Assembly: GCA_965649825.1 (NCBI GenBank)
Contig: OZ287699.1
Coordinates: 186,001-250,000 of the forward strand
From: Penicillus capitatus
Taxonomy: Eukaryota > Plantae > Chlorophyta
DNA: 64,000 nt
Reading direction: 5' to 3'
The notes beneath the pieces were generated by a model. The model made no database searches. It worked only from the letters and a program-made list of their open reading frames with translations, and was not told where the DNA came from. A program made the translations under genes and the position numbers. Within the stretch, counting starts at the first letter, position 1. Each line of letters starts with the position of its first letter. Below are positions 880-32,334 of the stretch, in pieces.

Positions 880-3659
880 ATGTGCGGTGCGAAAAGGCTG
901 AAGCCATTCATTTTGAAGCTCTGGTTATGCTTGCTAACCTTGACGCCAAGTTCTTTTTCTGACAGTACGCGTACCGACGAGATCAGCATCGCATCCGAAG
1001 AACAGAACTGGCCTTCTCCGGGTCACGACAACCGAGATGCGCCACTTTGGCTTAGCTCCAACCAAAGTGCCGCAGTGTTACCGCTGCATGATAGAGGGAC
1101 CGCATGGACGAACCGTCCTTGCTGTGAAGGAGCGGAAGAGGAGCAGTTCAGCAGATTTCCTTACTTATGCAGCCTGCGGCTGTCCGGAAGTCGAAAACAC
1201 GTCTGCACCGCCACACTCATTGACCAGAGATGGATCTTGGCAGCCGCTCACTGCATCGATCCGAATCTTCGTCAATCGGCTGGGTGTTATCCTCTCGTCT
1301 ACTGCGGCGATTCCAGAGTCAACACACCAAGCGCAGAAAAGGTGATGCGTATGGCTCTGGCCAGGAATGAAAGGAAGATCACCTCTTGCCTGCCCTCTCT
1401 GTAGATCTTCCATGTCGTCGAAGCTTATGTACACGAAGATTGGATCGGGGACGTCTTCTACGGTTCCGACGTTGCTATGCTGAAGCTGGACAGAAATGCT
1501 GAACTTCCTATTCCGCGTTTGTTCCGCGAGGGGATGGTTTTGAAGGAAGACATGGAGCTGCTTTCGTCCTCATGGCGCATGGTGAAGCATTCCATCCACG
1601 TCAAAGAAGAAAGGCAAGGTGGCGGCGATGGCGGCGGCCCAGCCGCATTACTCAATCGCCATATGTGCACGAAACAACCCGATATCATATCGAAGAAGAG
1701 TTGGTTATGCATCGGCGCGCGGACAGAGAATTCGCCAGACGGTGAATCAGAATACGGGCCTCTGGCTTTGCGTTCGAAGTTTGTGTCTTCTATAGGCGAA
1801 TCGGCACATCCCCTTCTGTTGGTTGACCGGCCAAAAGGGCATCTGGAGAGGGGGCAGCCAGAGGAGGATCTGTTGGTCGGTCTCATGTCTTTTCACGCAT
1901 CGCATGCAGTATGTCCATCGTGTTCTGTCTACACCAGCGTTGCGTATTTCAGAGAATGGGTGCTGGAAACGATGAAGGGCAGTTTCTTGCCGAGCCGCTG
2001 CGTGCTCTTGCCAAAACGTGTGTTAGAGACACCGAGTAATTACAGCCATGAATCACCCGAGTTGACGACGCCGCCTCAAGTAGATTCTCTAAACACACAG
2101 TGCCTTTGTGTTTTGAGCCGTATTTGGCAGTTTGCATTTTCATTGGGGTTTTGAGATGCGTCCATGTGTGGCTAAGTGCATGCACCTTTGTGACGTAGGT
2201 CGTTGAATCGCCCGTGCTGTTGCCGGAGATTGCGTACCCGATAAACCGAACCGCCGAAGAGGAGGAAAAAGGCGAGACGAAGAAAGGAACGAAAAAGCGC
2301 AGACCGAGGGAGAAATTCAAACCAAGTGAGCCGTCCGGTGGTGCTCAGGACATAGGACCCGCCAGAGAGAAAAGGAAGAAGCCCACGGCAAGAGGAATGT
2401 CGCCTGTGCTCGAGGCCGAGGCGCCCGTCGCCGAACCGTTGAAGGAAGTGCCCGTCTACGAAATCGAGTCTCCCGTTTTGGAGACGGAGAGCGAGTATCC
2501 GAAAAAGTTACCGGCCGAGGAGAAGACGCGAAGCAGACAAACCATATGGAAAGAGAAGCCCGAACCCGAACTCGAACCCAGGGAAGAATTTAGACCCGGT
2601 TTACCATCTGGCGCGTCTCAGGAAACGGGATTCTTTCGAGAAAAGAGAAAGAACGCGACGGTGGGAGGCGTGCCGGTACCTCAGATCACGCCTCCGGTTT
2701 TGCAGCCGAAGAGCAAAGCGCGCGTGGCTCAGACAACAACGTCTCCCGCTTTGGAGCCGCAAGGCGAAGTGCCTGCGCGAGAGGCCGATGCACCCGTTGC
2801 AGAACCGATCAAAGAAATGCCCGCGCGTGAGGTTGAATCTCCCGTCTTAGAACCGGAAGATGAAGTTCCTGCGCGTGAGGCCGATGCACCCGTTGCAGAA
2901 CCGTTGAAAGAAGTGTCTGTCTACGAAATCGAGTCTCCTGTTTTGCAGACGGAAAGGGAGTATCCAAAAGAACGTCCTGCTGAGGTGACAGAAAAAGGTG
3001 TAGAAACAGAAGCAGGAGAGACGTCAGAGCCGAAGACACCGTCTACCGTCGGCAAGCCATTCGCTGCGTTTGCGGAATCGGAACCCGTTGGCGAGAAGAG
3101 AAAGACGGCGAAGACGAAAGGAGTGCCCACTCCTGTGGTTATATCTCCCGCTTTGCAGCCGAAGAGTAAGGCCCAGAAACAAAGACCTCTTGTCGAAGAG
3201 AAGAGCAAAGAATCGAGAGGAACGAAGAAAAAGACGAAAGAAGAGACAAAGCGCGGGGCAAAGGAGACGAAAAAAGGACCTCAGAAGAAAGGATCCCCTA
3301 TCGAAGAGAAAAGAGGAGCAGAAAGGGGCACAGGAGAAAAGAAGTCGACGACTTCAACCGTGACATCTCCCGTTCTTCCAGCGGAGCCAGGACTGGTCGG
3401 CGAAAAGAGAAAGGGTCATGCGGTACCAACGACGTCGGCAAGACCCGTCCAGCAACCGCGAGTTTACGGCGCACAGGCGAAACGCACTCCGCCCGGAAAA
3501 CAGCAGAAGGGTAAAAGCATTAAAGGCAAAGAGCAGAAGAGGAGACAATCAAAAGAAAGGAAACCAAAACCTTCAGTCCGCATGAAAGAAAAAGATTTTA
3601 GGGTGCGAGAATGGACCCACATGTTGGAAGGTCTCGGGGAAGAGGGTTTGCTTTTGTGA
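880..3659 (+). CDS. P1: signal peptide + trypsin-like (S1) serine protease domain + long Lys/Glu/Pro-rich repetitive linker (multi-exon)
   Basis: MCGAKRLKPFILKLWLCLLTL N-terminus; RFPYLCSL, WILAAAHC (His), DVAMLKL (Asp), spliced NSPD-GESAHPLL (Ser), DLLVGLMSF. Intron positions are shared with P2-P4. Confidence 0.8.
2402..2985 (+). repeat. Internal coding repeats in the P1 linker (32-aa unit EVPAREADAPVAEP.KE.....ESPVL, about 3 copies)
   Basis: Direct repeats visible in DNA (gaggccgatgcacccgttgcagaaccg at about 2780 and 2876) and in ORF 2214..3659. Confidence 0.85.
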
Positions 3660-3707
3660 GGCATGGATTCTGGTTTTTAACACGGTCCGATGGATTCGGG
3701 TTTTCAG

Positions 3708-4190
3708 ATGATGATGGAGTATATTATTGAAGACGACAAGGCAGTGGCCGATGCCATTCTGCAAATTGACCTGAATGCAATGCGGTGCCTGAGAAAGATC
3801 GTTTACACAGCGCGTTTTTGCTCACAGAAGCGAAACGTTAGTGATGTGGACAATGGTATTGAGCGCGTGTTTATGTGAGAATCCTCAAAAGGAGCCCGTT
3901 CTGATGCCGCCGACGCCGCTGGCCAAACGCCACTAGATTGGGCAGTTGGGACGGTGGATCGTGGCAGGTATCTATCAGCCGCGACGCAATGCTCTCGAAC
4001 AGTATGGCTCAGATGTCTATCACTACCGTCACGTCAAAATCGCGTAAAAACCGGCACGAAGGACACCCTTGGTCAACGTCTGTGCTTCGATCGCTCCATG
4101 TTCCGACGACACGCGTTCGGCTATCAATGAGCTTTCGATACCACAAGGAAATCCCAACATCTCAGATGTCTGTGATTCTGACGAGAGAGA
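3708..4190 (+). pseudogene. Decayed ankyrin tail of P1
   Basis: MMEYIIEDDKAVADAIL and SETLVMWTMVLSACLC match the N-cap of the P2/P3 ANK module. GARSDAADAAGQTPLDWA is one ANK repeat. RTPLVNVCASIAPCSDDTRSAINEL matches the P2 C-cap. The pieces lie in different frames. Confidence 0.7.
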
Positions 4191-4512
4191 AGTCAGTTGC
4201 ATTTGTTTGTGCCTCGTGTGTTATTTTCGGTCGCTCAGAGAGGCGCGAGGCTTTTCGTGCCGTTTTCGTGGCACGTGGGTGGCCGAGTTTGCCGTCTCGT
4301 TTACTGCCTGCTCTTCGCGGTGCATCGTTTCTAACCGTCTGGTCAACATCAGCATTCAGGAGATCACCGCGGACGAACGGCACGCTCACAGTTACTCGGT
4401 CGAAGGTACGATTCTTTTTGCGAACGGCGTGGCGGTCCTGCACGCTGGCACTGTGTCACTTACCCCCTCCCTGAACAGCCCTCTACCGTCTTTGTGGGTT
4501 GCCGTCAAGCGA

Positions 4513-6054
4513 ATGAACGAAACGGACACCGAAGATGTGGCTTCGCGTCTGTCGAGGCGCATTTCGCGCTTCGCCGAACGTTTTCTTAGCGGCAACGGCG
4601 AAAGCCACACCATTAACTACGCCTACACCCTTCGAACGAAGCCCCTGTCCGGACTCTACACAGTAACCCGTCCTGGGACCATCAAGCCTCTTCGTGACTA
4701 TGCGCGTCTCAGTGCTGTATACACAGAGACCTCTTGAACGGTGTCCCCGGAAAATTCTTCTCCGACTCCTTTATCATCGCCGGCCACGAATGGTGCATTC
4801 CCCTACCTTGTGCCTTTCTCGGCGAGCGTACGGTTCGTAGGCGTATCGCTGTGGAGGCCATCAGCGAGCACCTCTCCCTTTTTCTCGTCTCGCTCGATCC
4901 GCAGCCCGTGGAAGTATCCTGTACATTCGATATTGTGAATCTCTTGGATTGTTCTAAGATCATCAGTAAAGGTGAGGTAGACCATTTCGCATGCCACGTC
5001 ACATCAGATTCTGTAGGAGGGCGCAAAGTGATAGGGCCTGCAGGCGGAATGGGTTTCCTCAAGATCTGCTCCGTCAATGATCTCGCGACGCCGGAGAACG
5101 GTTTCCTCCGAGAAGATGGTTTCTTTATCATCGAGTTGAGACTCGGCCTCGTCTCGTCGATGGTCGAAAACTTCACCATCGATGCGGACGAAAGCACGTG
5201 CATCAGTGTGGTAAGCAAGAAGGCAGATGTCGCATCGATCGGAGGCCATCGTGCGTTTCAGTGGAAGCTGCGGTGTCTGAAGGAGATGGACTATGCCGAT
5301 ATCATCACGAACGACATCAGCACTGCCCAGGCGACTTGGTAGGATCCACCTCGACGGTCCGAAAACGATCGAACAGTGCAGAGGGATGCATATAGGCGTT
5401 TGAAACTCGAGCCTCTAAGATCGGCCGAGAAAGGGGATGTCTATGGCGCACATCTCTGCTGTACAACAGACGTTGTTACCGACGCCAAGTTTACTTTTTC
5501 GGTGCTCAATGTTCATGACGAGAAACGAAGCATCACACGAGGTGCGCAGCATAGCTGGCATTGCCTTCTGACGGAGGGGGCCCTTTGCCCATACGACAGA
5601 GTTTCTCTGCAAGTTTCCTTTGGGTGAGTCGAGTTGGGGCTGGAGCGATTTTGCCGAGATGTCTATGATTCACGATCCCAGATTTGGATTCCTTGAGGAA
5701 GGCTGGATCACCTTCATCGCTCGGATCTCCGTCATCAACGTTCGGCCGTTACGCCGCAGAGTAAACGCACCTAACCATGGACACTTCCGCCATCTGTTGC
5801 CGATACAGACGCTGAGGCAGAGGCGTCCGAAACACTTGTGCGTTGTCTGTATGTCTAAGGAACAGACCTCTGGATTCGTCCACGGCAAAACGTAAGTCCT
5901 TACGGCGGCAGTTATCGGATTCTCGGCTGCGATTGTGGTGTCTAGATCGCACAAGTGTGTCTGCGCCGAGTGTTGTGAACTGCTCTTCAAGAGAAATGCT
6001 GGATGCCCAGTTTGCCGAGCCAAAGTGGATTCCATCGTTCTTCACTATTTCTAG
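4513..6054 (+). CDS. MATH-A: tandem MATH (TRAF-like) domains + C-terminal MDM2-type C2H2C4 RING
   Basis: Splices into an intact frame with MATH motifs (FIIAGHEWRI, SLFLV, WGWSDF, GFLEEGWITF) and CVVCMSKEQTSGFVHGKTSHKCVCAECCELLFKRNAGCPVCRAKVDSIVLHYF*. Confidence 0.85.
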
Positions 6055-6867
6055 AACGTGCTTTTTCACTGACCGGCTCGTTTTTGTTCGATTGACATAT
6101 TCGTGACTGCGAATGCAATGGCTGTCGACATTCTTTGCAGTTTCTGATCGCAGTGACTGACTGACGGAACCATTGCTTGCCGACGCCAATAGATGAACTT
6201 CTGTCTCATTTTTCTTTTGTTCTGCCAAGTCTCGTGCGTCATCGGCCGCTATGCCAAGCACAACGCTGCGCGCCAATGCATGCCACGGCATTGATGCAGG
6301 ATGTGTACGTTTGTTTAAGTGGGAAAGCGATACGACGACACGAGAGGCTGACGAAGCACGCATCCCGAAAACGGCGTACTGTATCGAAATGTCGCGTGCG
6401 ATCGTGATCGCACGTGTCCATCGGCGTACGACCATCGCCACCTCGACGTCCAATCGAACGTCTGCATCAAGTATGCTGCTCTATCGCATGCGTACCGAAA
6501 ACGCAACGCACGAGATGTGCCCCGTCGCTGTCGAACAGCATGGGAGAGAGAGCGGATCCGCCGTACACAGATCGTCGCTCGCGATCGGTCGAGCGCTTAG
6601 CGTCGACATCGTCGTCTTAGGTCGACAGCAATCTATCTCAGTTAGATGCCGAGATGGCGGCGGTTCAGCCGTTGGAGTGTTCGTTTTTGTGCCTAACCGT
6701 CACAGTCACCATCGTGCATGTCTTTTCTCATTTCCTCCTTTCTTCGACGAGGCCGACAGCAGTTTCCCCATACCCATCGAAGGCAGCGGGCTTTACTTGT
6801 CTTCTCATCTCACGTTTCTGTATTCTTCACACCGAGCGCCGTTCTCTTTCTAATGTACCTTGCATAA

Positions 6868-8437
6868 ATGAACGAAGCAACAACCGCAGGTGTAGCTGCT
6901 TCCTCACAAGACACATCCCTTTATCGCACGTGCAGATGGGTGCGGTATCAACAACGGCGTCAACTACTCCTACACGCTCCAGACGCGACACATGTCAGGG
7001 AAATACGAAGTGCGTGAGAAATGGAAGCCACTGGAACATGCGCTTTTTTCTAATATGCACATTTTTTGACAGTGTCACATCCATCGATGCTTTCTCGACA
7101 GACCTGTTAACGAATTCCTATCAGATCCATTCACCACTGCCGGATATCAATGGTGCGATCGCCCTATCCACTATCTCTCACATACTGTCTGTTTATTGGC
7201 AAGGCGGCTCAGATTGAGTAACGCTGACGGAGAGATCTTCGTTTTCTTGGTGCTCATGAGCAGAGCGTTGGAAGACACGCACTACCGATTTACGCTGGTC
7301 AATCATGTGGATTCCGCAAAGAGTATCACCAAAGGTCATCTCTACCGCGATGCCTGCTCGATGCGATCGTGGTCTGTCGGCAGGGTGGAAAGGGATCCTT
7401 GGATCGGGAACAGCCAAGGGATACAGTCTTTTTCTCGCAGCTGGCGGCGTGCAGGATCCGAATGTCGGTTATCTACTGAGCGACGCCTTCACCGTAGAGG
7501 TCCGCATCGGACGCGTGCTGCCACAAAACAAGAGCCTGCGAATCGAGTCCTGTGGAGAAACGTGTATCTGCACCGTAAGGACCGGACCGAGTATCGCGTA
7601 CGCGAAGACATGTGGTGCTTGGTTGCTGTTAGTGGAGACTACGAGATCTTGTCGACTTCCAGTTTTCAGATCTGATCCTGGACGATGTCCAAATCGGCAG
7701 GACGATCTGGTAGGCCAACCAGTCCATCTCTCCTAGCAATGCTCAGCGATGCGATGATGGTGCAGGAATGTTAAACTCGAGCCGAATAAATCATCAGAAA
7801 AGGGGAGAGACACCTGTGGCGTCTACTTCTATGGTAAATGCTTGTACCCGACCGAAGTGAGTTTGAACATGACGCTGCTCAACTGCTGCGATGCATTGGA
7901 GAGCAGGTCCAAAGGTATGGACGTCACTTCATCGTCGATGGTCGCTATGTTAAACTATGTGGCTGCAGAGCTCGCTTGTGTCTATGCCGAGGGCCGTTCG
8001 TGTCGCGGATGGCGTGATTTCATTGAAATGCAAGCACTCTTCGATCCAAAACTGGGATTTCTTGATGATGGATGGCTCACGCTAACCGTCATTCTTACCG
8101 CCGCCAGGAGCGTAAATCGAATAGAATCCTGGAGATATTGTATACCGGCTTTGCAGTCGGCGAAGAAGCTGGCGATAGAACAAGCTGCATCACAAAGAGT
8201 GAACGAGCCTCTTTGTGTCGTGTGCCTCGTTAAGAAGCAGACGTCTGGATTCATCCATGGAAAGACGTGAGCCATGTGGATGAATCGAGGCCATGGCTGA
8301 CGGTTCGTCGGTGATTGGTGTTCGTTAGGTCACACAAGTGTGTCTGTGCGGATTGTTGTCGAATACTACATGAAGAGAGAGCCAGATGTCCCGTTTGTGC
8401 CGCCAAAGTGGATGCCATCATCATCGGCGACTCCTAA
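6868..8437 (+). CDS. MATH-B: MATH-MATH + MDM2-type RING
   Basis: Same exon structure as MATH-A. FTTAGYQWRL, RGWRDF, GFLDDGWLTL; RING CVVCLVKKQTSGFIHGKTSHKCVCADCC...CPVCAAKV...GDS*. Confidence 0.85.
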
Positions 8438-10555: not shown

Positions 10556-13500
10556 ATGTTGGTCCTCGTCCATTTGTGGATTTGTTTCCTGACCTTTGCG
10601 CCGAACCCTACCAGGTCGAGCTCAGGTATCATCGAGTCCGTCATCCTGCTCTGCTATACGTGTGCCCCCAGAGGTCGACCGTCAAAGTATCCGACCGCCA
10701 CTTGACGGCGACGAACACGTCGAGACTGGGCTTCTGCATGGCGCGGAGGTCGACCGCTCAAACCGTCAGGCTCTGAAGGGCAGTCGACACACAGAGGAAG
10801 ACCGGTTTCCTTACCTATGCAGCCTCCGAATGTCAGGAAGCCGGAAACATGTGTGTACCGCCACGCTTGTTGATGGGAAATGGCTCGTCACGGCGGCGCA
10901 TTGCGTCGACCCGAATTATCCCGGCTCGACTGGCTGCTATCCACTCGTCTACTGTGGCACTTCTCGAATTAATGCCCCCACCGCTGACAAAGTGACAGAA
11001 CCCGTCTAGTGGAATGGACGGTGATTGGTTGACGCACGATGTTTGGTTTTAGACGTTTCATGTTGTCGAAACGTACATGCATGAGGACTGGATGGGCACC
11101 ATCTTCTACGGTTCCGACATCGCGATGCTGAAACTGGACAGAAATGCGAAACAGCCTGTTCCGCGTCTGTATCGAGAAGGAATGTATCTGGTGGAAGAAT
11201 TGGACGTGCCGTCGACGAACTGGGACGTCAAGAGGAGATTACGAGCGATGTCTAAGACGCCAACGACCAGCGCGACATCGTCGACCTCCTCTGTTACCGT
11301 GCGCAGCGACGACGTCTGTCAAATGCAACGCGAAATCATTTCGAGCAAGGGCTGGCTCTGCGCCAGCGAAAGCGCCAAGGAGACATGCGACGGTGCGCGC
11401 ACCGACTGCGCCCTTCGTGTATGACGCTTTTTTTCTGTGTTTTAGACGGAGCTGGTAACCCTCTGCTGGTGACCGATCGGCCACGTGGTCGCCTGATGGA
11501 CGGCTTTCCTGCAGAGGACTTGTTGGCAGCTGTGAAGTCTTTTGACGCGTCGGATCCGAAATGCCAGTCATGCTCTGTGTACACCAGTGTTGCGTACTTC
11601 AGAGAATGGATGGTGAGGACGATCAAGGGAAGATCCGAGCCAAGTCGATGTTCGCTGTCTCCGAAATACGAACCGCAGGAACGCATTCCAGCCGGTTGGC
11701 GACAAACCCGACCGCTGTGCAAATCTGAGGTAAACCGTAGACGCAGCGATCGATCTCTTGCGCCGAGCTTGCGGACGATCTGCGACAAAGCGTCTGTCTA
11801 TATTCTCCCGCTAATACATACGATGCTGCGCAGACGAGTGAAGACAGACCCGTTGAGCAAATAAAACCGAAAAAAAAGAAAAAGCACGACGTCGTACCTG
11901 CAGCAACAGAACCAAAGGGGGATATCAAGGAAGAAACGGATCTTATTGAAGAATCCGTTGGACTGTCCGAGACGGGTCCCGAAGAGGCACCCGCTCAGCC
12001 ATGGAAACCGAAAAGATATAGAGAGCAGGCCGCTAAGCCTGAGAAGAAGACACAACACGAACAAGAGGGGGTTGATGTAGTAACATCTGGAATGGAACAT
12101 ACAGAGAAATTCGACAAACAAACCGCAGCAGGTCCCGAAGTCACCGAGCGACCGGATGCGGGTCCCGAAGTCATACAAGAGGTCGACCTGTTAATTTCAG
12201 AGGTGACCGAAATGCCAATCGATTCCGTGACACCTGGGGAGATTGAGGAAACGGAGGTCAGCAGCGACGAACCGATGGACGACGGAGGGGACGACGACTT
12301 CCTAGATGTCGAAACGTCGGCCCCTGCGCCAGAGAGTTATCCCGCCGAAGTATGGGATTTGCTTTCCGTAAGGACAACCAGTCATTTCCCGCTCGACTTC
12401 ACATGCATTGCCTTCTTAGATGATGTTAGAAGCCATCAGAATCGACGACGACACAACGGCAGCAAAGGTGCTTCGACGTGGTCTAGATCCAAACTCAAAG
12501 AGCATGGACGAAGAGTCTTTTTTGGACAAGGAATCGACACTGCTCCACTGGACGGCAACCTTCGACGCTTCGCGATGTGCCAAGGTAGATACCGTCGTTG
12601 TCTATCCAGCCCATAGATGTCGCTGCCTTTGTCTGTGCTGAATGATCGTGTGCTTAGGTCATTTTGGACAAAGGCGGCGATGCCAATGCTGTGGATCTGT
12701 CCATCGGCACACCGCTGCATAAATCGGCGACTTATGGATACGCCGAGGTCACGAAGGTAAGATTCGCGTCGTCTCGATATCTGCGCCGTTGACATTGTGC
12801 AACAGATCCTTTTGAGCAAAGGAGCAAAGGTCGATGCTAGGGACAAGTCTAGCAGAACACCGCTTCGCTATGCAGCAACGTACGGAAACGTCGAAGTCAC
12901 AAAAGTAACTTCCAGATCTGGCCTCGGCGCCTCACGACTGGGCAATGGACAGATCCTCGTGGAACATAAAGCCGATGTTGAAGCCGTGGACGATTCCGGC
13001 TGGACACCGCTTTATTTTGCGGCCAACTACGGATACGCTGACGTTGCGCAGGTGACGCCCGACTGCTGCCGAGGCGCTCTCTACTCGTGTATGCCGAGTT
13101 AGGTGCTTTTGAATGCGGGAGCGATTGTGGATGTCACGGACAAGACTGGCTGGACACCAATTTATACTGCAGCGTCCAATGGACATGCCGAAGTGACACA
13201 GGTAACAGTCGAGCGATGTTCGATATCCTTGCCACGTGGAGATCAACGTAATAGGTTTTGCTGGACGGCGGTGCCGACGTCAACGCGACGAACGACGCCG
13301 GATGGACGCCACTGCATTCTGCGGCAGGTCAAGAGAACGTCGAAACTGTCAAGGTAACTTCTATACAGGCCGCATCTTTCAACAGTTCCTACATGCACTC
13401 TGATGTGACAGGTCCTCTTAGACGCCGGAGCTTATGTCCGAGCCACAGACACGACGGGATGGACAGCGTTACACTGCGCAGCACGATGGGGAAGACTAGA

Positions 13501-13691
13501 GACCGCAGAGGTAAGTCCACGCATTACGGCGACTAGATCTTAACAGTATGGCTCAGTTGCTGATTGCCGCTGGGGCGTCGAAGTCGAGCAGAGATGATAT
13601 AGATCGGACGCCCTTAGACTGCATCTGTGAACCCACTGCCTTCTGTTCCGAAGAAACACGCTCAGCCCTCACGGAGCTGCTGACGCCTTAG
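10556..13691 (+). CDS. P2: signal peptide + trypsin-like pseudoprotease (Ser->Ala) + acidic linker + ankyrin repeats
   Basis: MLVLVHLWICFLTFAP; WLVTAAHC; DIAMLKL; spliced ETCDDGAGNPLL; six 99-nt phase-0 ANK exons; Cys-containing C-cap ending LLTP*. Confidence 0.85.
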
Positions 13692-13999
13692 AGGGTGCAG
13701 CATCCATCTCAAGCAATGATGCATTCCAAGTACCTAATAAGCTTTTGTCAAGTGTATTGTCTCGACTAGCAGAGACCGAAATGAAAATCCAGTTTGGTTC
13801 AAAGGAAGTATAGACGAATTAAGAAGACAGGATATATTGTTTGCGAGATTGTGGCTGTTGCGTATACCGTTCAACTCGTGGCCGCTCGAGCGTGATGTCT
13901 GCTAGTCACACCACTACACCATCTGATCAAGGACGACGCGCAGTGCGTTGATCCAAACGTCGTGGTGCTCTGTTATAAGCCATTCTCTCGTCTGTTTGC

Positions 14000-15595: not shown

Positions 15596-15896
15596 ATCAT
15601 GCCTCACCGACAACGACTGAATCTCCGCCTTCTGTTTCTTACTCCATCGATGAACCTATGCAGTGCGAGCCCTTCGGATTTGACGTTCATCTCCCTGATG
15701 TACCGCATCAGGACGCCGTACTGTAAACGAAAAAGAAAACGGTTTGTTGGAGTGTAGGTTTAGGAGATCGCAGCAACGCGTAGCTGAAGGCAATCAGAAT
15801 CAAGCGTTTGCAAAAGTACAAAATTGTGCGATTTGCTAATCAGAGAAGGCCATTCCATTTCGGAAGACGCGATTAGACGTCCTGTGCCGAAGACAG

Positions 15897-18547: not shown

Positions 18548-18848
18548 GACAGATCTCTCCAGCTCCAACGACGAACCCGTACCTCTTTATGTCGCCGTAT
18601 TGACTGACGTAGCTAGTCCTCTGCGAAGAAAGGAATCCATGTTATCGATCTTAACCGTTGATGTCGATGTCGCATCGACGACTCTCCTCCGAAGTGACGT
18701 TCTTTTAACCGCTCGATCACGCTGCGTACGACTTTCTGCTACAGAAGAGATTTCGAAGTGCTGCGTCATCTACGTCGTCGCGGTTTCGCATCTCGGTCAC
18801 CGCCGCCACGACCCTCCCTTTCTTCGTGTTTACAGCCGCTTTCCGTGA

Positions 18849-20337
18849 ATGGACGCAGCAACGACCGCAAGTGCGTTACCTCCTTCGCGCACCGCGTCGA
18901 GTCTCTCGCTGACGATTCAGGCGGCAGCGGGTCAAGCAATGGCGTGAACTATGCATACACTCTCCAGACAAAACGACTCTCCGGACGATACGAAGTGAGC
19001 AGACGCCACGACGACGATGCTTTCCTGACTTAGTGCCCTCGACAGTGTCACATTCACAGATATCTATTAGATTCAGAAACTACAGAATTCATGACGGACG
19101 CGTTCTCCGTCGCAGGATTTCGGTGGTGCGTTGCGCATTTCGTCTCGAGGCTCCCGCCGTCTTATCTCCACATCTTCTCTCAGGCAGCTTCTTGTGAATA
19201 TCAAGAATAGAAGGATCGTCATGTACCTCAAGTCATCCGACGCTGAACCTGTGGAGGTTCGCTTCAACGTTCAGTTGACAAATCAATTGGACTGGTCCAA
19301 AACCATGAGTGGAGGTCCTATCAAGCATCTACTCTAAGCTCGTGTTGCATTCGAGCGCGTGCCAGGAACGCGTCGAGTATTCGAGCCAGGGTCGCTGTGG
19401 GGGTTTGAGGGGAAAGAGAACTCGGCATCTGATGTGCGAGATCCGAATGCTGGTTACATGGAGAAGGGTTGCTTCACCGTCGGACTGAACATCAGTCTGG
19501 TCTCTTCACTGAACGAGAACCTCATCGTCAGCACCCAAGGGAATCCGTGCGTCATCACCGTAAGCCTGTCAAACGTCTGAAGTCGTGTCAGATGGGAGGG
19601 CGGTTGCAGTGGCAGCTGCGCGATTTGAAGGAGATGGTGGATTCGAAGATCTACTCTGATGAAATCCGCACGGCAAATGCCACATGGTGAACACCTGTCC
19701 TGTCTGTCGGCGATCCGTTAAGACAGACGCGTTCGGTGCAGGAAGCTAAAGCTCGTGCATTTCGAGACGAACAAGGGGGGAGGTTTTTATGGTATCTATC
19801 TCGTCTGCACAGGCTCCTGTGCGACGCAAGTCAAGCTCAGAGTGCGAGTGCTCAACCACCGCACCGAGAAGCGCAGCATCACCAAAGGTCCCCGTCTCTT
19901 GCTGTTGCACCGTGCTGACGGAGAGTGATGGCGTAGAGCTTGCGCGCAGATTCGAAAAGGGCACTTCGAATTGGGGCTGGCATCATTTCATGGAAACGAC
20001 AGTGCTGCGAGACGAAGGATTAGGATTCATTGAAGACGGATGGTCGACTCTAATCGCCTGCCTCTCGTTCAAAGAAATCAAGGACAAAACGCAGACCGCA
20101 ATGGCGGAACAACTCCAAGCACGGGCACCAGTGATGGAAAAGCACGCAATGCTGACAGGGGGAAACGAGACCGGGACGACGAAGATGGACGACGCCTCAG
20201 TGCACGGCGAACTGAAAATCGCTGGCATGTGTCGCAGAAAGTGCCTTTGCCCACTCTCCTGGTTGGCTCTTATTAAGATAGCACTTGCAGGAATCGGAAA
20301 GGAGCTGGTGCTAAGGATGGCGGCACGCCCCGCGTGA
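18849..20337 (+). CDS. MATH-C: MATH-MATH protein without a recognisable RING
   Basis: Same exon layout as MATH-A/B (MDAATTA|SG..NGVNYAY; FSVAGFRW; WGWHHF; GFIEDGW). The C-terminal tail is unrelated. Confidence 0.8.
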
Positions 20338-21120
20338 AGAAATGTGGACTCGCGTTCTGCGGAATTCAGTAGCTTCATCTTCATCATCCGACGTTACTAG
20401 AAGATTCATCGCATCACATTTATTTTTTCGCTCCTCTGAGGATTCTTAGCTGGATGGTTCGAGGATGACCATTTCATATTACTTTTTTCCGATGTCAAGC
20501 GAATGCTGTTTGCCTGAGAGGCTGTTATTGGTTTCTCTTGATCTCTGGCTTCTTGCCGTAGGCTACAGCTGAGAAACGCACGCACCCTCTGCACGACACT
20601 CTACTAAATGCACGTTTTATCTAAAGTTATCTGATGTGTGTACCTTGTTGGTGACGTGGCCTCGTCCATTGACAAACTTGACGCGAGGAATCGGATGTGG
20701 ATTGTAGAGAACGAGAACAGAATTCTTGTAACGCTTTGGCTCGGGAAATGCATGCATGGACGTCGCGATCACATGGCGGGCGTCACTCAGATAACCAGCC
20801 CCCATCGGGCGGCCGCTAGCAATCCGTCTAAGGACTCTTCGCCGGCCCTGCAACAACCGGCATATACATTCGGATACTGGCTGGTCACATGAAATAGGAC
20901 AGGGCTTGCAGCAGACTGCCATTGCTGTCGACCAGACAATGCAATACTTCGGGGGTCTTTCCAGTGGCCGCTGGTCGCTTTGGTCGTTCGTCTGCGATTC
21001 ACACGTCTAATCTATATACTAACTGTGGGCGTATGCAAACTTCGTGTCGACGACGGGACTGTGTGTCTGTCAACTGTCGCGTCAGACGCGTACATTAAGT
21101 GCGTCTTGACGCAATGTAAG

Positions 21121-21951
21121 TGTTGGTCCGCTGGGCGATCAAGCGAAGAAGTTTTTGGCGACGGTTTGAAGGCCGTCAGAAATGGTCGCTTGAACGTGAA
21201 GAAGCTCTCAGCGACGGTTAAGAGAGCGCTTGAGAGGTTCGCGAAGTGGCCGAAGTGGGGTGAAAGACGAGTCTGTAATAAGACGTGAAAGGCGTGAATT
21301 GGCAAGTATCCAGAGTTCGAGTCTGGATGACGTGCATTCTTGGCGTATTCGGAAAAATGTTACTGTCATCTGTGAGCACTTAGACACTCGCCAGAAATCT
21401 CAGAAACTGGCAGAATTCGATGATTGCTGAGGACGCAGCGACGTCGAGTTTAGCGCTGCAAATGACCTGCGAGGTGCAGGTGACGTCGAGTTCTGAGCCG
21501 AAAGTCCGAGGCGACGGACGATGCTGTAACCCTGAGTAACCAGCCTGGATTACAGAAAAAGCGAGGAAAGCGTGGCAGTCAGTTGACGTGATGAAATGGA
21601 CAGTCAACGCGCTGAAAAGAAGACGCAGCCTGTGGTAAAAGCCTGAAGATGCAGCGTCGCAATGAGGTGAGGACATGAAATCAGGGTGTCGCCAAGACGC
21701 GACGCAAGACGTGAATTCAGTGTGTAACTAAGAAAAACGCAAATGAAACGGAGAACATGGGCATGTAAGACAAAAACTTTAGGGGCAAGTTTCGGTTTAA
21801 AAGCTTTCGGTGTTGCGTGCAAATTCTGTCGATCGAGTCGCTTTGCGTTGCTGACGACTCAAGCGTAATTCCGCTGCCGTGCTGACGATTTTGGCCTGTT
21901 TTTCAGTGCCAATTCTGCCCCATCGTCGCATAGTACTGCAGAAAACCAACA
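21121..21951 (+). mobile_element. 5' LTR (about 831 bp) of a truncated Ty3/gypsy-like retrotransposon
   Basis: Terminal inverted ends TGTTGG...CCAACA, immediately followed by a PBS-like 12-mer and the element ORF. The left boundary rests only on the TGTTGG match. No second LTR in the window. Confidence 0.6.
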
Positions 21952-21963
21952 TGGTTTCGGAGC
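21952..21963 (+). promoter_or_regulatory. Primer-binding-site-like sequence TGGTTTCGGAGC
   Basis: Two mismatches from the canonical tRNA-iMet PBS TGGTATCAGAGC; directly abuts the LTR-terminal CA. Confidence 0.6.
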
Positions 21964-21971
21964 GAGCCAAG

Positions 21972-23460
21972 ATGGCTCATGTGTGCCTTTGTTTCTGGCT
22001 ATGTTTTGCACTTGTCTCATGCGTGAGAACGAGAAGTGGTACCTCGACAGAACCCAATCTGTCGCAGGAAAATCGCGAGTTGAGAGAGCAACTCGAACTG
22101 TTAAAAGAGGAGATTCAGCAGCTCGGACAGCCTAAGACTAGTTCTGAGGCTACTGGATCGAAGTGGTTTCGTTGGGCATGGTCATTGGTAACAAGGACTA
22201 AAGTTCCACCGCTCGAATTTCCGGAGGACGATCAGGACGAGGTGGTTCCAGAGGAAGACGAAGCGAATGATGAAGCGGAAGCGTCATGTGATGGCGTATT
22301 TTCCTGCTCTGCATCACTCGGTAGTCAGATTTGGAGGACTTGTCGTTTCTTTTTCCCCCAAATCTGGATACTGATGACGCGTCAGACATTCTGGGTGTCC
22401 CAGATGAATCAGTCGTGCGTCGAACTGGTGTTCGTGTGGAAATAGGATGCGGCGCAAGTGGTTGGTTTAATGTTAGCCATTGCGTTTATCGCGTGTCTTG
22501 TCAATGCTGTTGCGTCCTTGGCGCTCGTGGTGTGGGAGGGGCGTCTTGGGTCGGTATTCCAGCGTTTTTCAAAGAAGTTGTCGCTTTTGGTCCTCATACT
22601 CAAGTTCAAATCACCAGGTTGAGAATGAGGTGAAGAAAAGTGTGCAAGAAGAGTTGGCCAAGGGTGGTCAAGCTCACGCTGTTGCAGCTGTCAATCAAGA
22701 CGCTAATCAGCGAGCTGTACCGCAGAATTCAACTATACTTTGTTTCAAATGTGGCAAGCCAGGCCATATTTCGAGAAATTGTCCTACCTGGAGAAACAAG
22801 TTTCAAGCTCAAGTTGAGGCGTCACGTGCGCAAGAGCAATTTGTGAGGCCTGCGCCAAGGCAACGAAGAGACGAACGTGTTCAAGTGCCGTCGGATATAG
22901 CTATTTCGCCTGAAGTCGTTAGAGCGAGCCAGCTTAAGCTGCCGACTCAGACTCAGGTGGAAGCAATGAATAACGTCGAACAAGCAGAAGCAGGAACTCA
23001 AATGAAGGCTCCCGCGTTTTTGGGACCAAAGGGTGTGAAATGTGTTTTGATAATTGATACTGGAAGTTCGGTGAATGTGATGCCTGAAGTGCGCGTCAAG
23101 AAGATGGGCCTGAGTGTTAATGCGGATTTGGCGCCAGGACAAACTCATCTTAAAGCGGTTAACGGAGGGATCGCGAGGGTCTTGGGTATCCTGAATTTGA
23201 GGGTAAAGCTGGGAGCGTGGGAGGCCGAAGTACCTTTCTATGTAGCAAGAGGTGTGTCCCACGTCATTCTGGGAGTGCTGGGATTGAGTGCAATGGCCGT
23301 CACGATAGATCCGGCAAATGACAGGCTTGTCAAGGGGACGGATGCATTGCTGTGTGATGGGTATCAGGATCATCCACCAGCATACCACCTAGTTGATGTT
23401 GCCGGATACGACCTGCGAGATGCACAGCCCTCAAGTTCGCACCCAAATGCGTCCCAGTGA
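21972..23460 (+). mobile_element. Gypsy-like gag/protease region (frameshifted; RT, RNase H and integrase absent)
   Basis: Zinc knuckle CFKCGKPGHISRNC; retropepsin LIIDTGSSVNVM...LKAVNG...VILG. No introns. Confidence 0.9.
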
Positions 23461-23579
23461 TCACCTAGTTAAAGCACATTCCTAGTTTTTCTTTAAAGTT
23501 TAAGTCTGGAAGGACATCGCTTTGTTGTGGATCGCCACTCGTCATTAGCCAAAATGACGTGGTGACGCGGAAGTTACCT

Positions 23580-24690
23580 TTTTGCCTGGAATGTATTTCT
23601 TATTGTTCTGTATTTCCAAAATTATCGACTCCGGGTCTGTTGATGTCGTTTGGCTTTCAGAGAAAGGTGAAATCTCTGTTCGCATTTGGAATAGTGGACG
23701 TGTCTCGCAATTTGTCGCACATAAGACAATCGTCCTAGAAGTTTATTCATGTATGTGTCCTGTGTTGCTTTCCAAGTCGTCGGCAAAATGACGAATCTTG
23801 TTTTTGAGCGTAGTTTTGTTGCAAAGCAGTGTATTCAGTTTCTCGATGATTTCGTCATGGCATAAGCTTCTTTGCGGAAGTTGTTCTATTTGTCCGAATT
23901 TGTCGTATTCGGAGGCTATTGTCTCTCTGAGAGGTGTGACGTACGTTTCTAGTTGTCTCGCTGGGAGGGTCAGCTGTGGTGCTTGTATTGCAAGAGGGAG
24001 TTTCAGCGATCGAAGGAGGAGCTCTGCACGTGGTTCTCTCACACCTAACATGCTGATGATGGTCTCTGTTGGAGTGGTCTTGAGGGTACCGGCAATAAGA
24101 CAACTAGCGTTCATGTACATTCTGGTGGTTGTTTGCATTCTTGTCATTGATCGAAGTCCCGTGTGCATCCAGATTTCGGAGCTGTAGAGGAGACCACTGA
24201 GGGCGCACGATTTGACCACTAAGTGGGTAACCCACGGTTCGGTACCCCACAACGTCCGTGTTACTTGTCAGATAATGGTGAGGCGCCTGTTTTCCCTGGA
24301 GGCGGCTTCGGATGCGTGAATATGAAATCCCAGTTTGGTATCGACTGTGAGGCCTAGGTAGCGGCAGGTAGGAGACTCGTGGAGGAGAGTTCCATTGAAA
24401 AGGAGGAAAACAGGGGGAGAATTCCGGAGTCGACTGAGCTTTACCAACTTGCATTTTCGTTCGTTGATTGTCATGTGTTTTTCGGCAGCTCAGTTTCCAG
24501 CTTGCGTAGAATGTTTTGGATCTGGCTGAGGTCTTTGAATGTTTTCTGCAAAGGGGCACTTAGGAGAAGATCATCTGCGAACATCGTGAGTTCGCTGGGG
24601 AAGTAATCTGATCTGCTGCATCGTTGATGAAGCAGATGAATCAGGGAAAAGGGCGATCCCTGTGGCAATCCAAGCGTCGGTTACACTTGG
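23580..24690 (-). mobile_element. 5'-truncated, decayed non-LTR (LINE) retrotransposon, RT C-terminal half
   Basis: GLPQGS, MFADD, YLGLTVDTKL, GLLYSSEIW and IAGTLKTTPT spread over three frames. Boundaries approximate. Confidence 0.85.
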
Positions 24691-25574
24691 TTTTTTTACG
24701 AGACCCATTGCGCACCGCGACGGCGCCCGTTGGCTCGCATGAGACATCCTGCACGTTAGTTAGATGCATCCCCACGCCCTCGGGCAGTGATAGCCACTCT
24801 CTGGCCGCTCGGTCGTGGAAGCAGAAATAGTGCTAGACTCGGAAGACGGCGACGAGCTTTTTGGAGCCATCGGTTCGGTAGAAATCTCTCTCGCGTAGAC
24901 ACTAGTTTGAAAAAACACGTACTCCCTACTAATCAGTGATGTGACGTTTGGTCCTCTTGCTGATCAGCAAATCTGGGACTTCTTCTTCGGAACGATTTTC
25001 TCTTCGGCGACGTCTTTGTGGATCCATCCGGCCGTGTGCCGTCAAAGAGGCATTCAGATGCCAAGCGCTGACCGTCCACTGCAGATCATCTATAGGTCTC
25101 TAGTCGACTTAAGGCTGTAGTAGTTCCGCATAGGGAAGCTTGTGCACTCAGCGCTTGCCTGTGTACGTTATTTCCACCAAGGCACCTCGAATGTTGGCGG
25201 CGTCTAGGGTAAGACGTTCACAAAGTACTAATACAATTAACTGTTCGTATAAGGAATGTAAAGGAATGTACCAGTTCTTGGTGGACAGTTTTGGGCTGGT
25301 CGTACATTCATTCTTATTGCCGCATTCAAACCGACGTCGTTATTGGATCGTCATAAACAGGACAGCGGGTTCCAAAACGAACGGCTGGTTATCCAAAACA
25401 AACTTTGCCTGTAGCGGCGTCAAAGGCAGGAAAACCAACTGAGCACGGTGTCCAGCCACGTTCCACTTACTCTGTCACCCTACCAATTGTAGTGCAGATC
25501 TACCCCCCAAACGTTTGTTGACACGAATCCCCAGATAATACACAAAGCTTGAGTAGTGGGTGATAGCGATTGAG

Positions 25575-25800
25575 TCAAAAGTAGGTGATGATCACGGACG
25601 GCATCCATATCGATGCCCCGTTCAGGCAACCGGAATCCTTTATGTGGAGCAATTTGCAGCAGTCAAGGCAGACGCGTCTGTTCGATCTACAGTCGACAAC
25701 CTCAGACATGAAGAGCAGTGTGATTAGCAAACTCACATTTTTCTGCTAAACATACCAGACGTCTATTTTTCTGCGAGACAGATGACCTTCTTCTTCGCCA
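25575..25800 (-). pseudogene. Decayed MDM2-type RING exons of MATH-D
   Basis: KVICLAEK*TSG (TAG at 25763-25765 where MATH-A/B have Gln) and last exon SNRRVCLDCCKLL...GCLNG...VIITYF*, homologous to the MATH-A terminus. Confidence 0.75.
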
Positions 25801-27179
25801 CAGTGTGGCTTTGAAATCTGCACCGCCAACAGCAACATGGACCGTCGTGAGCTGGCTTCTTCGGCGAGGGAGTATTCCTTGCGATTCTTGAACGAAAAGC
25901 GCACAGCAAAAGTGATCCACTCGTCATCCAGGAAGCCAAGCACGGGATCACTGAGATCAGGCATGTCCACAAAACTCGGCCAGCCTCTGCTGGAATCACC
26001 CGGGGTGAACTTGTGTGCGAGCTCTTCACCATCGGCATTTTGAGATGTCAGTGGGGCAAAGGAGAAGGCAGACACCTTTGGTCACGCATTGTGTCTCGTC
26101 CAGGTGGTTAACAAGAGTGACACTGAAGCCAATCTCAGCGGTGCTGTGGCTGGAACACACGAGAAAGATGCCCCATCTGTCGTCTCCTGTGATGGATGTC
26201 GTACGCTTGAGCTTCAGATTCCTGCGCAACGACACATACACCATTGCTCAGTCGGAAAGCGGGAGTGCAACGAGCGATCACACCATGTCGTGCCTGCCAT
26301 TTTAATATCGTCAGATATGATATCCGAGAAACCGATCTCTCTCAGGCGACGCAGTTTCCACTAAAAACAGTCCTCAGTACACGAGTGTGGCCTCATCGAG
26401 AGGTAAACTGTGGCCGTGTAGGATCCGAAAGTGCAAAAGACGAGGTTCTGGTTATCGGGCGGAATGATGCCGATGTTCAGCACGACGATCAGGCAGTTCT
26501 CCAGCAGGTAGCCTGCCTCAGGATCGCCGACGTCCGCGGCAGAGATGACGTCGCAGTGACCCCAGGTACCTCCCGGTCTAAGCATCTTTCGCCATCCTTC
26601 CAGACGGGGACATGTAAGAGATGACGAGGCACGGAGTGAGAGGCCATTCACCTCGCGTCACACTTTTCGTCGAGTCCAAAGGATTGATGAGTTTGAATTT
26701 GTAGTGCACGTCCACGGGCTCTCCGCTGCCGACCAGTGCCAAGAACAGACAGATTTCCCCCTGTCTGTTCTTCACCCTGAGCCTCCTGTCGAAGACATCG
26801 GAATGGGCTTCAGGGAGATGGCGAAAGCGTCGGCCCGTACCACTTGCGTCCGGCGACGGTGAACAGGCCGGACTGGAATTCCTCGACGTTTGCGTCTAAG
26901 AAGTCTCTATGAATGCGACACTGCCGCCGCGAATGCCGTGTTCGCGTCCCCCGACTGATGGTTAGCTCACTTCGTATCGGCCGGACCGGTTGTCTGTCAG
27001 AAGGCTGCAGGAATAGTTCACGCCGTTGCTTGTGCCCGTCCCGTTGCTTCTCTTTCGCACTCCCTCCGCCTTTCCTGTATTACTCTCCTCCGCCTTTGTC
27101 AAGGACAAGTCTTCAGGGAGCAGCAGTACGGGTTCCGTTTGCTTACCACTCTAGGGCGTTGTGTGTAGGCGTTGCCCAT
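25746..27179 (-). CDS. MATH-D: MATH-MATH protein with N-terminal MGNAYT; RING out of frame
   Basis: NGVNYSC..SGRYE|CRIHRDFL, FTVAGRKW, RGWPSF, GFLDDEWITF; same intron positions as the other MATH genes. Confidence 0.8.
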
Positions 27180-29854: not shown

Positions 29855-30222
29855 ACGAAGATGGAGAACAGAGAGTGACGGAGCTGCAGAAACAGCATCT
29901 CTGTCTCCAACAGTATCTCGTCGATCATCCATCGGACGCACATGCACCTCGGATAAAGGCAGAAAACAGGTCGTCCGCAACCAGACCTTTGTGCAGTGCA
30001 GAGCAAGTTATCCGCCCATTCGTCGGATGTAGGTGCCCGAGTGAAATGGACAGGAATCGATGAAGAGAATCTGGAACCAGGACTGTGCCTCTGTGTCGTC
30101 TTCAGAGAAAGGGGGCAGTGCTGCATCGATCAAATTGAAAGGCTGAAATTAAGAGATGGCTTATTGTCCACCCATTCGCGCCTCAATCGCCGAAGTTCAT
30201 TTTTACGTAACAAGGCAAGGCC

Positions 30223-32334
30223 ATGTCTGAACTTTCTTCCTGCACTAGACGTCCGCCTCCTTCGGAAAAAGTGGAGTCACTGCTGACAAGGCTGTGGCTG
30301 ACGCTGCTGCTGTTCGCACCGAATCCTTCACACGGCAGCTCAGGTATAGACGATACCGATATCCCGTCCGACGGCAAGTGATCGTCATGCTGTAGACTAT
30401 AGCGACCTGAACCCGCCGTTGACACGCGTCACCGAACAGAACGTCGCATCCCTGTGCCCTCAAGGTCTCGAGGCCAACGCGACGAACCGTCACTGTTGCC
30501 CTCAAGGCAAGCGCGCAGGCGAAAGCAGATTCCCGTACGTATGCAGCGTCCGGAAGGCGGGAACGCGAAAACACCTTTGTACGGCCACACTCGTCCACCG
30601 TAAATGGCTTCTGACGACGGCGCACTGCGTCGACCCTAACAGCGACGACTCCGCCGGCTGCTACCCCCTCATCTACTGCAGCAGTCCCGTCGCCAACGCA
30701 CCGGCCGAGGAGCAGGTGAGCAGTTTCCCTTGAAAGCGACCTCTCGCACAAAGATCCGACCGATCGTGCAGGTTTTCCACGTCGTCGATGCCTACCTGCA
30801 TGAGGATTGGTTCGGCGACGCCGCCTATGGGTCCAACGTCGCCATGCTGAAGCTGGACCGCAATGCGAACTACCCCATTCCGCGGTTCTTCCGCGAATGG
30901 ATGTTCGAAGGCGCAACCATGGACGTTCCGCTGTCTCGCTGGGTCGCCGAGGGCAAATCTTCGCGCAAGTGTGGCTGCTGCAGCTGCGAGGTCAAGAATC
31001 GCAACAACGACGCCTGTCAGAAGTACCCGCAGATCGTATCCAAGAGAAGCTGGCTGTGTGTCGACGGCGGAGAGACCGACAACTGGACAGGTGGACTGAG
31101 AAGCTGAAGGTCGCTTCTTCTGTTCAGGCTTCGACGCTTGCGCTTTCTAGGGGAAAAGGGAAGTCCTGTTTTGCTGGCCGATCGACCGAAGGGCAAGCTG
31201 GCGAAAGGAAATCCCAGCGAGGATCTGCTGGTCGGTTTCATGTCCTTCAGCACTTCCGATTCAGAGGGCAAGACTTGTGCTGTGTACACCAGTGTTTCCT
31301 TCTTCAGGACCTGGATCATGAAAACGATTGGAGGCAAAACGAAACCGAGTCGCTGCATGTTTGTGCCGAAGGCCGAGCCCAAGAAAGAACCTCATGACCA
31401 AAAGGATCAGGAAAAACCAGCGGCAGGCACTCAAGTAGAATCCTTAAAAACGCAGTTCCCATGTGTTGTTGTCATATGTGGCATTTTCTTCTTGGATATA
31501 GCTGACGCTTAATTTGACTCGAAAGAGAATTTCGTGCAATGTAGGTTGGAGTAGCAAAAGAAGAACCTACAGCGTCAGAGAAGAGCGAGAAGCAGACTGA
31601 AGAGGTGTCCGCCCCAGAAGCAAAGAGCAAGTCAGAGGATGAACAGCTGATCAGCGAGTTCAGAAGCCTCACCAAAGAACAGCAGATCCAAGTAGCCCGT
31701 TCTCACTCTTGAAGCCCTTTGATGTATGCGTCGAGTTCTCAGAGGATGGTCGACGCTATCAAGGCCGACGATAATAAAACAGCCAGAGCACTTCTTACAG
31801 CAGGATTGGATCCGAATACAGAGAGAGGCGACCGTGAACTTCGGCTTTCTGAGGATTCCAGGCTTCCCCACTGGGCCGCCCGCCTTAACGCTTCTGAATG
31901 CGCCGAGGTAATCTCGCCTCTACTGCTGTCCAGACATGCTCAGTGCATCCAAATCCTCCGCGAAGCGATGACGAGTGGATTTCTGTGCAGGCTTTGTTGG
32001 AGAGCGGCAGCGACGTTGACGCCTCCGACGCAAACAAAATGACGGCGCTCCTTTTTGCATCTTATTTCGGGCACCTCAATGTTGTAAAGGTGACTTCTAG
32101 AACAGTTCTTCGCTTGATATCTCACGCTTCGTTTAATAATAGGTTCTCTTGAAGCACAGCGTGAACGTGGAGGCTTCGGACCCGAACGGACATAGCTCAC
32201 TTCTTCTGGCGGCTAACAACAGGCAGACTGACGTCGTAAAGGTATCCTGAAAACAACTTCTGATATTAGCCGCACGACAGCTTGATGACTAGGTCCTTTT
32301 GGAAAACAAAGCCAACGTCAACTCCACAGACTAA
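30223..32334 (+). CDS. P4: signal peptide + trypsin-like pseudoprotease (Ser->Lys) + ankyrin repeats truncated by premature TAA
   Basis: LLTRLWLTLLLFAP; WLLTTAHC; NVAMLKL (Asp position is Asn); spliced DNWT-GEKGSPVL; TAA at 32332-32334 in the third 99-nt ANK exon. Confidence 0.8.
31610..32097 (+). repeat. 488-bp near-identical tract, copy 2 (partner at 17271-17758)
   Basis: Direct sequence comparison. Confidence 0.95.

Follow-up and report, generated by a model that had tools for sequence, protein, structure and literature searches.

Several vertebrate members of the S1 peptidase family, namely haptoglobin, hepatocyte growth factor / macrophage-stimulating protein, protein Z and azurocidin, are pseudoproteases in which the chymotrypsin fold has been kept under selection although residues of the catalytic triad were lost, and the cleft region has been reused for binding. 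These proteins carry kringle, Gla/EGF or CCP partner domains, have known ligands and belong to lineages unrelated to the algal genes described below. Large S1 expansions routinely hold many inactive members. To our knowledge, S1 pseudoproteases are well known in animals and hardly studied in algae. Here, we describe an array of four plus-strand genes (P1 to P4) that occupies 0.9-33 kb of a 64,000-nucleotide stretch of DNA from the green alga Penicillus capitatus (assembly GCA_965649825.1, contig OZ287699.1, positions 186,001 to 250,000; hereafter the window) and whose 5′ exons code for a trypsin-like domain. An earlier note on this DNA had read the array as an alternation of active and dead proteases. 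We consider it likely that the four genes are a green-algal tandem array of anciently diverged S1-ankyrin paralogues, in which P2 and P4 became pseudoproteases through independent losses, P3 is a predicted enzyme and P1 is of doubtful activity.

The gene models were obtained by reading the DNA directly and splicing it at GT-AG introns of 46-63 nucleotides (nt). In all four genes this gave an open frame of 338-361 codons, comprising a signal-like segment, the protease domain and a short tail. The protease exons, delimited by splicing and Pfam, are located at 880-1341, 1405-1741 and 1796-2079 (+) in P1; at 10556-10625, 10672-10991, 11053-11392 and 11446-11729 (+) in P2; at 15897-15987, 16037-16356, 16408-16729 and 16777-17063 (+) in P3; and at 30223-30343, 30396-30715, 30772-31090 and 31151-31434 (+) in P4. 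The paralogues share 48-56% protein identity, and no trypsin-like copy beyond them was found by a tblastn search of the window. A phase-1 intron cuts the equivalent of the GDSGGP motif at the identical position in all four genes, splitting the Gly codon of the motif in P1 (1741|1796-97).

After splicing, the motif reads GESAHP in P1, DGAGNP in P2, GESGSP in P3 and GEKGSP in P4, just as the earlier note had reported. His57, in the context AAHC or TAHC, is retained in P1 (1249-1251), P2 (10899-10901), P3 (16264-16266) and P4 (30623-30625). The Asp102 position reads GSD, with a GAC codon, in P1 (1468-1470), P2 (11116-11118) and P3 (16471-16473), and GSN, with the Asn codon AAC, in P4 (30835-30837). 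Ser195 is encoded by TCG in both P1 (1801-1803) and P3 (16782-16784), and its place is taken by Ala (GCT, 11451-11453) in P2 and by Lys (AAG, 31156-31158) in P4. The His57/Asp102/Ser195 triad is thus complete in P1 and P3 and incomplete in P2 (Ala195) and P4 (Lys195 and Asn102), which would make the latter two S1A family homologues rather than peptidases.

Because the Ala codon of P2 and the Lys codon of P4 lie two codons 3′ of the acceptor, no in-frame alternative acceptor restores Ser. Rescue of the Ser by alternative acceptor usage was therefore rejected for both genes. The window comes from a metagenome assembly, and the dead motifs might for this reason be suspected to be artefacts of a wrong splice choice or of an assembly error. 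However, the replaced codon lies inside the downstream exon, where acceptor choice does not touch it, and the same junctions and non-Ser residues were found in two contigs of the ENA assembly ERZ26696514 and in a second contig of ERZ25074695. We therefore regard an artefact as hardly credible.

A syntenic array was found in ERZ26696514. Its order is P1, P2, P3 ... P4, followed, as in the window, by genes for starch synthase, Clp1 and trehalase, and it is spread over two contigs that are probably haplotypes. All intron positions and reading frames are kept in the orthologues, as is nearly every GT-AG dinucleotide pair, one donor being GC. The nucleotide identity between the window and this related genome is 82-88% in exons and 74-81% in introns. 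The orthologous motifs are DESAHP (P1), GGAGSP (P2), GESGSP (P3) and GEMGSP, together with GSNIAM carrying Asn102 (P4); the former Ser site of P4 thus varies, being Lys in the window and Met in the relative. Because the orthologues of P2 and P4 also lack the Ser, both inactive states predate the split of the two genomes.

The ratio of nonsynonymous to synonymous substitution rates (dN/dS, omega) was calculated pairwise by the Nei-Gojobori method (NG86) with bootstrap limits, for the modelled coding sequence (signal segment, protease domain and short tail) and for the protease domain. The respective values were 0.29 and 0.21 for P1, 0.33 and 0.21 for P2, 0.24 and 0.18 for P3, and 0.21 and 0.14 for P4. 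The bootstrap upper limits for the protease domain were all ≤0.33 (0.32 for P2 and 0.22 for P4), and the N-terminal segments flanking the domain had dN/dS values of 0.24-1.0. The earlier note had allowed that the P2 and P4 domains might evolve neutrally; they are instead under purifying selection, and by these values the dead domains have been constrained as strongly as the Ser-retaining ones since the genomes split. A P4-like protease part with the motif GEKGSP, 95% identical at the nucleotide level, is present on a second contig of the window's own sample. Between it and P4, omega was 0.20 at a synonymous divergence (dS) of 0.11, with only two conservative changes in the domain. This copy (ERZ25074695 ctg335946, 2067-4800, 20x coverage) is joined to a different, intron-less ankyrin tail, and it could be a haplotype, a strain variant or an extra paralogue. 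Because frames and introns are intact, the same residue states recur in the relative and the dN/dS of the domain is low, P2 and P4 are best described, on comparative sequence evidence, as selectively maintained pseudoproteases, neither decaying genes nor splicing artefacts. The assignment of both as S1 pseudoproteases in the earlier note is upheld accordingly.

In each gene, the protease makes up only the N-terminal portion of a longer protein, which consists of a signal-like segment, the S1 domain, an acidic/lysine-rich linker and ankyrin repeats; the earlier note had missed this architecture. The last protease exon ends at a conserved donor, and a conserved acceptor ~110-140 nt further on opens a low-complexity exon rich in Lys, Glu and Pro. 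The tail then follows a plan of one N-cap exon and a run of five to seven single-repeat ankyrin exons of 99 nt. Linker and ankyrin exons were identified by exon chaining and tblastn, and the gene ends were set by a conserved terminal exon with the ending ...ELL(S/T)P-stop. Ankyrin repeats 3′ of P2, P3 and P4 were confirmed by Pfam (Ank and Ank_2 for P2) and tblastn. Because the exons form same-strand chains with GT-AG introns, the protease, linker and ankyrin exons of P2, P3 and P4 appear to be joined in one gene product each.

The P2 tail (+) comprises an acidic linker (11834-12349), an N-cap exon (12420-12584) and seven 99-nt ankyrin exons, with the stop codon at 13689-13691; its linker and ankyrin exons are all open. 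In P3, the linker (17200-17352, ending in ...SEFRSLTKEQQIQ) and the N-cap exon (17404-17568) are followed on the same strand by ankyrin exons at 17652-17750, 17800-17898, 17950-18048, 18104-18202 and 18259-18357 and by the conserved terminal exon at 18404-18547, stop included. The P4 tail (+) consists of exons at 31545-31691, 31743-31907, 31991-32089, 32143-32241, 32293-32390, 32442-32540 and 32596-32694, with the terminal exon starting at 32738. In P1, the intron at 2080-2198 joins the protease to a 1.4-kb linker exon (2199-3602, +) that is rich in Lys, Glu and Pro and has repeated SPVLE-type units. The relative has conserved both this acceptor and the start of the exon, with a 2-nt indel in the intron. 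Only a degenerate ankyrin-like remnant follows (~3708-4000), and neither tblastn nor Pfam found an ankyrin match in the P1 tail.

An alternative gene end, by read-through past exon 4 into a short hydrophobic tail, was rejected because of the 2-nt indel (P1) and an early stop (P3) in the relative, and also because the acceptor and exon further 3′ are conserved, while the P4 frame of the relative runs directly into the linker. This P4 frame meets no stop between protease exon 4 and ...EFRSLTEEQQIQ, which it reaches by way of SPxPEAxSEP repeats; in the window, the ...EFRSLTEEQQIQ motif is found in the next exon of P3 and P4. The introns after the protease exons of P1 (2080-2100) and P4 (31435-31455) start with a similar stretch of 20 nt (GTAGAWTCYYTAAAMAC..CAG), while the two proteins share only ~51% identity; the resemblance may reflect a shared signal for splicing or regulation, or coincidence.

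The linker-ankyrin tails of P3 and P4 (17270-18532 versus 31609-32866) share 83.6% nucleotide identity, compared with 59% for the protease-coding parts and 72-75% for each tail against either tail of the related genome. Because the tails are far more alike than the protease parts or the tails of the relative, they suggest that gene conversion (concerted evolution) has acted on the two genes in their 3′ halves only.

The tail of P4 also contains damage. Its third ankyrin exon (32293-32390) has 98 nt instead of 99 and an in-frame TAA, and the conserved stop after ELL(S)P in its terminal exon is lost, leaving the frame open for ~65 more codons, to 33061. Both exons are intact in the relative. These lesions are what would be expected if P2 and P4 were pseudogenes in decay, with the loss of the triad as a part of that decay. 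However, in both genes the protease exons have an open frame and undamaged splice sites across two or three genomes, the omega values of their domains are low, with upper limits to match, and that of P4 stays low even against its close copy. In P2, every linker and ankyrin exon is open, and the damaged exon of P4 can be skipped in frame because the flanking exons are all in phase 0, i.e., the exon is symmetric. We therefore consider decay of the two genes very unlikely. The P4 tail may be degenerating while its protease domain stays constrained.

All four domains matched the Pfam family Trypsin (PF00089) with scores of 58-87 bits, against a curated cut-off of 20.6. P2, P3 and P4 matched positions 4-220 of the 220 profile positions; the best stretch of P1 was limited to positions 5-100 because of an insertion. 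A profile of the family matched elastase and kallikrein chains with E=1e-50. AlphaFold2 models were made of P3 and P4, and were equally confident, with a predicted local distance difference test score (pLDDT) of 85.3 and a predicted template modelling score (pTM) of 0.87 for P3, and 85.7 and 0.87, respectively, for P4. A Foldseek search with these models revealed similarity to thrombin, factor XI, kallikreins and chymotrypsinogen (template modelling (TM) scores of 0.62-0.71, probability 1.00), and the predicted structures of both P3 and P4 take the two-beta-barrel chymotrypsin (S1A) fold. The Pfam scan found Trypsin alone in the N-terminal part and Ank repeats downstream, and no clip domain.

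Cysteines for the Cys42-Cys58 and Cys168-Cys182 disulfides occur in all four domains. Cys191 is found only in P2, being Pro in P1 and Trp in P3 and P4, and P3 also lacks a candidate for Cys220. Asp194 is absent from all four, its place being taken by Gly in P2 and by Glu in the other three. The residues aligned with IVGG are CEGA, LKGS, CQGG and CPQG in P1 to P4, respectively, compared with the IVGG-like motifs and GDSGGP of canonical relatives; a conserved Asn-Arg lies N-terminal to them, as does a Cys-Cys pair in three of the four domains. No zymogen activation motif, i.e., Asp194 with an Ile16-type N-terminus, was found in the alignment of P1 to P4. The earlier note was therefore correct in calling even P1 and P3 non-canonical.

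These features raise the possibility that all four domains are non-catalytic, the clade having given up proteolysis on losing Asp194, the Ile16 N-terminus and the Cys191-Cys220 disulfide, with the Ser of P1 and P3 kept for binding or for structural reasons. In favour of this, Glu194 occurs in P1, P3 and P4 and in their orthologues, none of the four has an IVGG equivalent, unlike the canonical relatives, SGGP has become SAHP in P1 and Gly193 has become Asp in the P1 orthologue, and omega is alike for Ser-containing and Ser-less domains. However, P1 and P3 retain His57, Asp102, Ser195 and Ser214 in both genomes, the Ser codon of P3 differs only synonymously (TCG in the window, TCT in the relative), and a 12-residue stretch around this Ser is unchanged. 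Several S1 proteases are active without the Asp194/Ile16 activation, e.g., V8-type enzymes with GNSGSP, which also counts against a wholly inactive clade. We regard this explanation as unlikely, though it carries more weight than any other rival.

We therefore keep to the reading in which only P2 and P4 are clearly dead. P3 keeps the His, the Asp, Ser195, Ser214 and Gly193, together with the invariant stretch around the Ser. Because its triad is complete and its motif near-canonical, P3 is the most promising candidate for activity in the array and probably an enzyme. The activity of P1 is doubtful because SAHP replaces SGGP and because of the Asp at Gly193 in its orthologue.

In a phylogenetic tree, P1 to P4 formed a clade with 100% bootstrap support relative to other algal homologues, and each gene grouped with its orthologue, also at 100%. 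The deeper branches were weakly resolved, with 58% for (P1,P2) and 39% for (P3,P4), while (P1,P3) and (P2,P4) received 4% each. The idea that the alternation reflects duplication of a live/dead pair thus found no support. Because the groupings (P1,P3) and (P2,P4) are unsupported and the substitutions in P2 and P4 differ in kind, catalysis was lost twice, independently. The order of the genes carries no evidential weight, since two live and two dead genes can be arranged in six ways, of which two alternate, a chance of one in three. A subfamily with Asn at the Asp102 position and the motif V-D-S-G-S-P, in which the Ser is kept, recurs in the same algal S1 family (P0045, P0050, P0055, P0061 and P0005, and the second domains of P0003, P0013 and P0040); the change from Asp102 to Asn was therefore fixed more than once in the family.

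The favoured topology weakly fits two tandem duplications, each followed by the loss of catalysis in one copy. By joining each live gene with its dead neighbour, it also gives sole, slight support to the proposal that P1 with P2 and P3 with P4 are obligate enzyme/pseudoenzyme pairs, the dead partner being a cofactor or decoy of the live one. The conservation of gene order and residue states in the relative would agree with such pairs. However, the bootstrap values are weak, alternation is a one-in-three outcome anyway, and the spacing is loose and variable, P3 and P4 being 14 kb apart in the window and ~48 kb apart in the relative, an interval that holds other genes and transposon debris. Obligate pairing is therefore improbable.

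Under the explanation that we favour, the array would consist of four anciently diverged paralogues of a green-algal, Bryopsidales-type gene family, whose common ancestor would have had the motif G-E-S-G-S-P, with Glu for Asp194 and no Ile16-type N-terminus. P2 would then have changed Ser195 to Ala, Glu194 to Gly and, in the window genome, Gly193 to Asp. In P4, Lys would have replaced Ser195, with Met instead in the sister genome, and Asn would have replaced Asp102. P2 and P4 would thus contain folded, non-cleaving domains, most likely binding a ligand, protein or peptide, in the former substrate cleft, and the ankyrin tail would offer a second interaction surface. Secretion of the proteins, cleavage by P3 and a functional link between neighbouring genes are further features that we infer.

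Several points weigh against this explanation. The splice junctions are all predicted, though they are conserved in the second genome, and the signal peptide is a prediction made by eye from a hydrophobic N-terminal segment. The dN/dS values come from two or three genomes and are pairwise, not from a branch model. P1 and P3 may be inactive too, considering that Asp194, an IVGG N-terminus and the Cys191-Cys220 disulfide are missing from both. The nonsense codon, 1-nt deletion and lost stop of P4 may mark the onset of decay in this genome, or else a tail that the protein can do without. Ligand binding by P2 and P4 is proposed by analogy with other S1 pseudoproteases.

The earlier note had placed the array in the frame of invertebrate immune cascades, and here it has to be corrected. 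The window contains genes for a plastid-type starch synthase, Clp1, trehalase and pmp-repeat proteins, as well as a nuclear psaE, and the protease has bryopsidalean homologues. The host, a photosynthetic eukaryote, belongs to the green lineage and is no invertebrate. The matches of the protease family and the gene content, together with a G+C content (~52% over the 64 kb) equal to that of Ostreobium, place it in the Bryopsidales. The genome of Ostreobium quekettii has a G+C content of 52.4% and an expansion of S1 peptidases to 189 genes, ~40% of which are predicted to be secreted (Iha et al., bioRxiv 10.1101/2020.07.21.211367). The psaE gene (56303-56635, +) has a very short N-terminal extension. 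At 43234-46490 (-), two open reading frames (ORFs) of 704 and 396 amino acids are full of GGAI-type repeats resembling those of polymorphic membrane proteins (pmp).

Genes for proteins with two MATH domains are interleaved with the protease-ankyrin genes, at ~4560-6170, ~6900-8400 and ~18870-20340 (+) and at 25746-26775 (-). The first two, which Pfam recognised as separate MATH-MATH-RING genes 3′ of P1, also encode a C-terminal C3HC4 RING, giving the architecture of TRAF-like E3 ligases; in the MATH-domain gene 3′ of P3, the Pfam scan did not detect a RING. The MATH genes seem to have been duplicated together with the protease-ankyrin genes. Transposon debris is found at 21879-25000, between the P3 unit and P4, with an ORF carrying a CCHC zinc knuckle and a retropepsin-like motif at 22480-23460 (+) and reverse-transcriptase-like ORFs at 23743-24668 (-). 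In the relative, an intron-less ORF of >1894 amino acids with NB-ARC and many TPR repeats (ctg303740, 17526-20492, -) lies ~7 kb 3′ of the P3 orthologue.

There is a slim chance that the S1-ankyrin genes and the co-duplicated MATH-RING genes form a lineage-specific surveillance or wound-response cassette of siphonous green algae, in which the dead domains would be extracellular or lumenal sensors or decoys, e.g., for foreign protease inhibitors or microbial proteins, and the live paralogues would process the signal. Such a cassette would be an independently arisen algal counterpart of the cascades of serine proteases and serine protease homologues in animals.

The case is solid but fairly ordinary, being an expected outcome in a large protease family, and it alters no general principle. 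Its value lies in being a clean, conserved algal example, with two independent catalytic losses within one four-gene clade and selection on both dead copies as strong as on the Ser-retaining ones, set in a protease-ankyrin architecture that is uncharacterised and also without the usual apparatus for zymogen activation. With its matched set of live and dead copies, the array could be used to ask what a protease fold does after cutting stops.

An exhaustive profile search revealed 6053 relatives of the protease domain, compared with only two weak matches in a word-indexed protein search with P3. Because about one in five (~20%) of the complete domains among the best 150 of these relatives lack a triad residue, published protease counts probably overstate the proteolytic capacity of Ostreobium-like algae. 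In the literature that we searched, neither inactive S1 homologues nor S1-ankyrin fusions were described for green algae, and the paper on the Ostreobium expansion (10.1101/2020.07.21.211367) is silent on inactive members and on the ankyrin fusion.

The best named full-length relatives were from Caulerpa lentillifera, Bryopsis sp. KO-2023 and Ostreobium quekettii, and seven of the 10 nearest full-length homologues scanned had the Trypsin+Ank architecture. These uncharacterised Bryopsidales proteins (e.g., Bryopsis sp. KO-2023 GMH36921.1 and GMH36826.1, Ostreobium quekettii CAD7703549.1 and Caulerpa lentillifera g4815), which belong to the S1 expansion reported for Ostreobium, have the same domain order as those of the window, from a hydrophobic N-terminal segment through the PF00089 domain to the ankyrin repeats, and share with them RFPY..SLR, TAAHCVDP and the insertion P.G....G.P..D after the Ser. 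However, they are only 26-35% identical to the window proteins and have the canonical GDSGGP, Asp194 and an IVGG-like N-terminus.

The serine protease homologues of arthropods, which the invertebrate frame had brought to mind, resemble P2 and P4 in having an S1A fold with a replaced catalytic Ser, and one of them, PPAF-II of Holotrichia diomphalia (PDB ID 2B9L), was the fourth structural match to the P3 model. They are secreted, conserved, non-catalytic cofactors in animal haemolymph cascades. A clip-domain serine protease homologue identity was rejected for the window proteins, which have neither a clip domain nor an activation site. The arthropod proteins have clip domains, are activated by cleavage and typically exchange the Ser for Gly, whereas the window proteins have Ala or Lys/Met at this position, ankyrin tails and an algal host.

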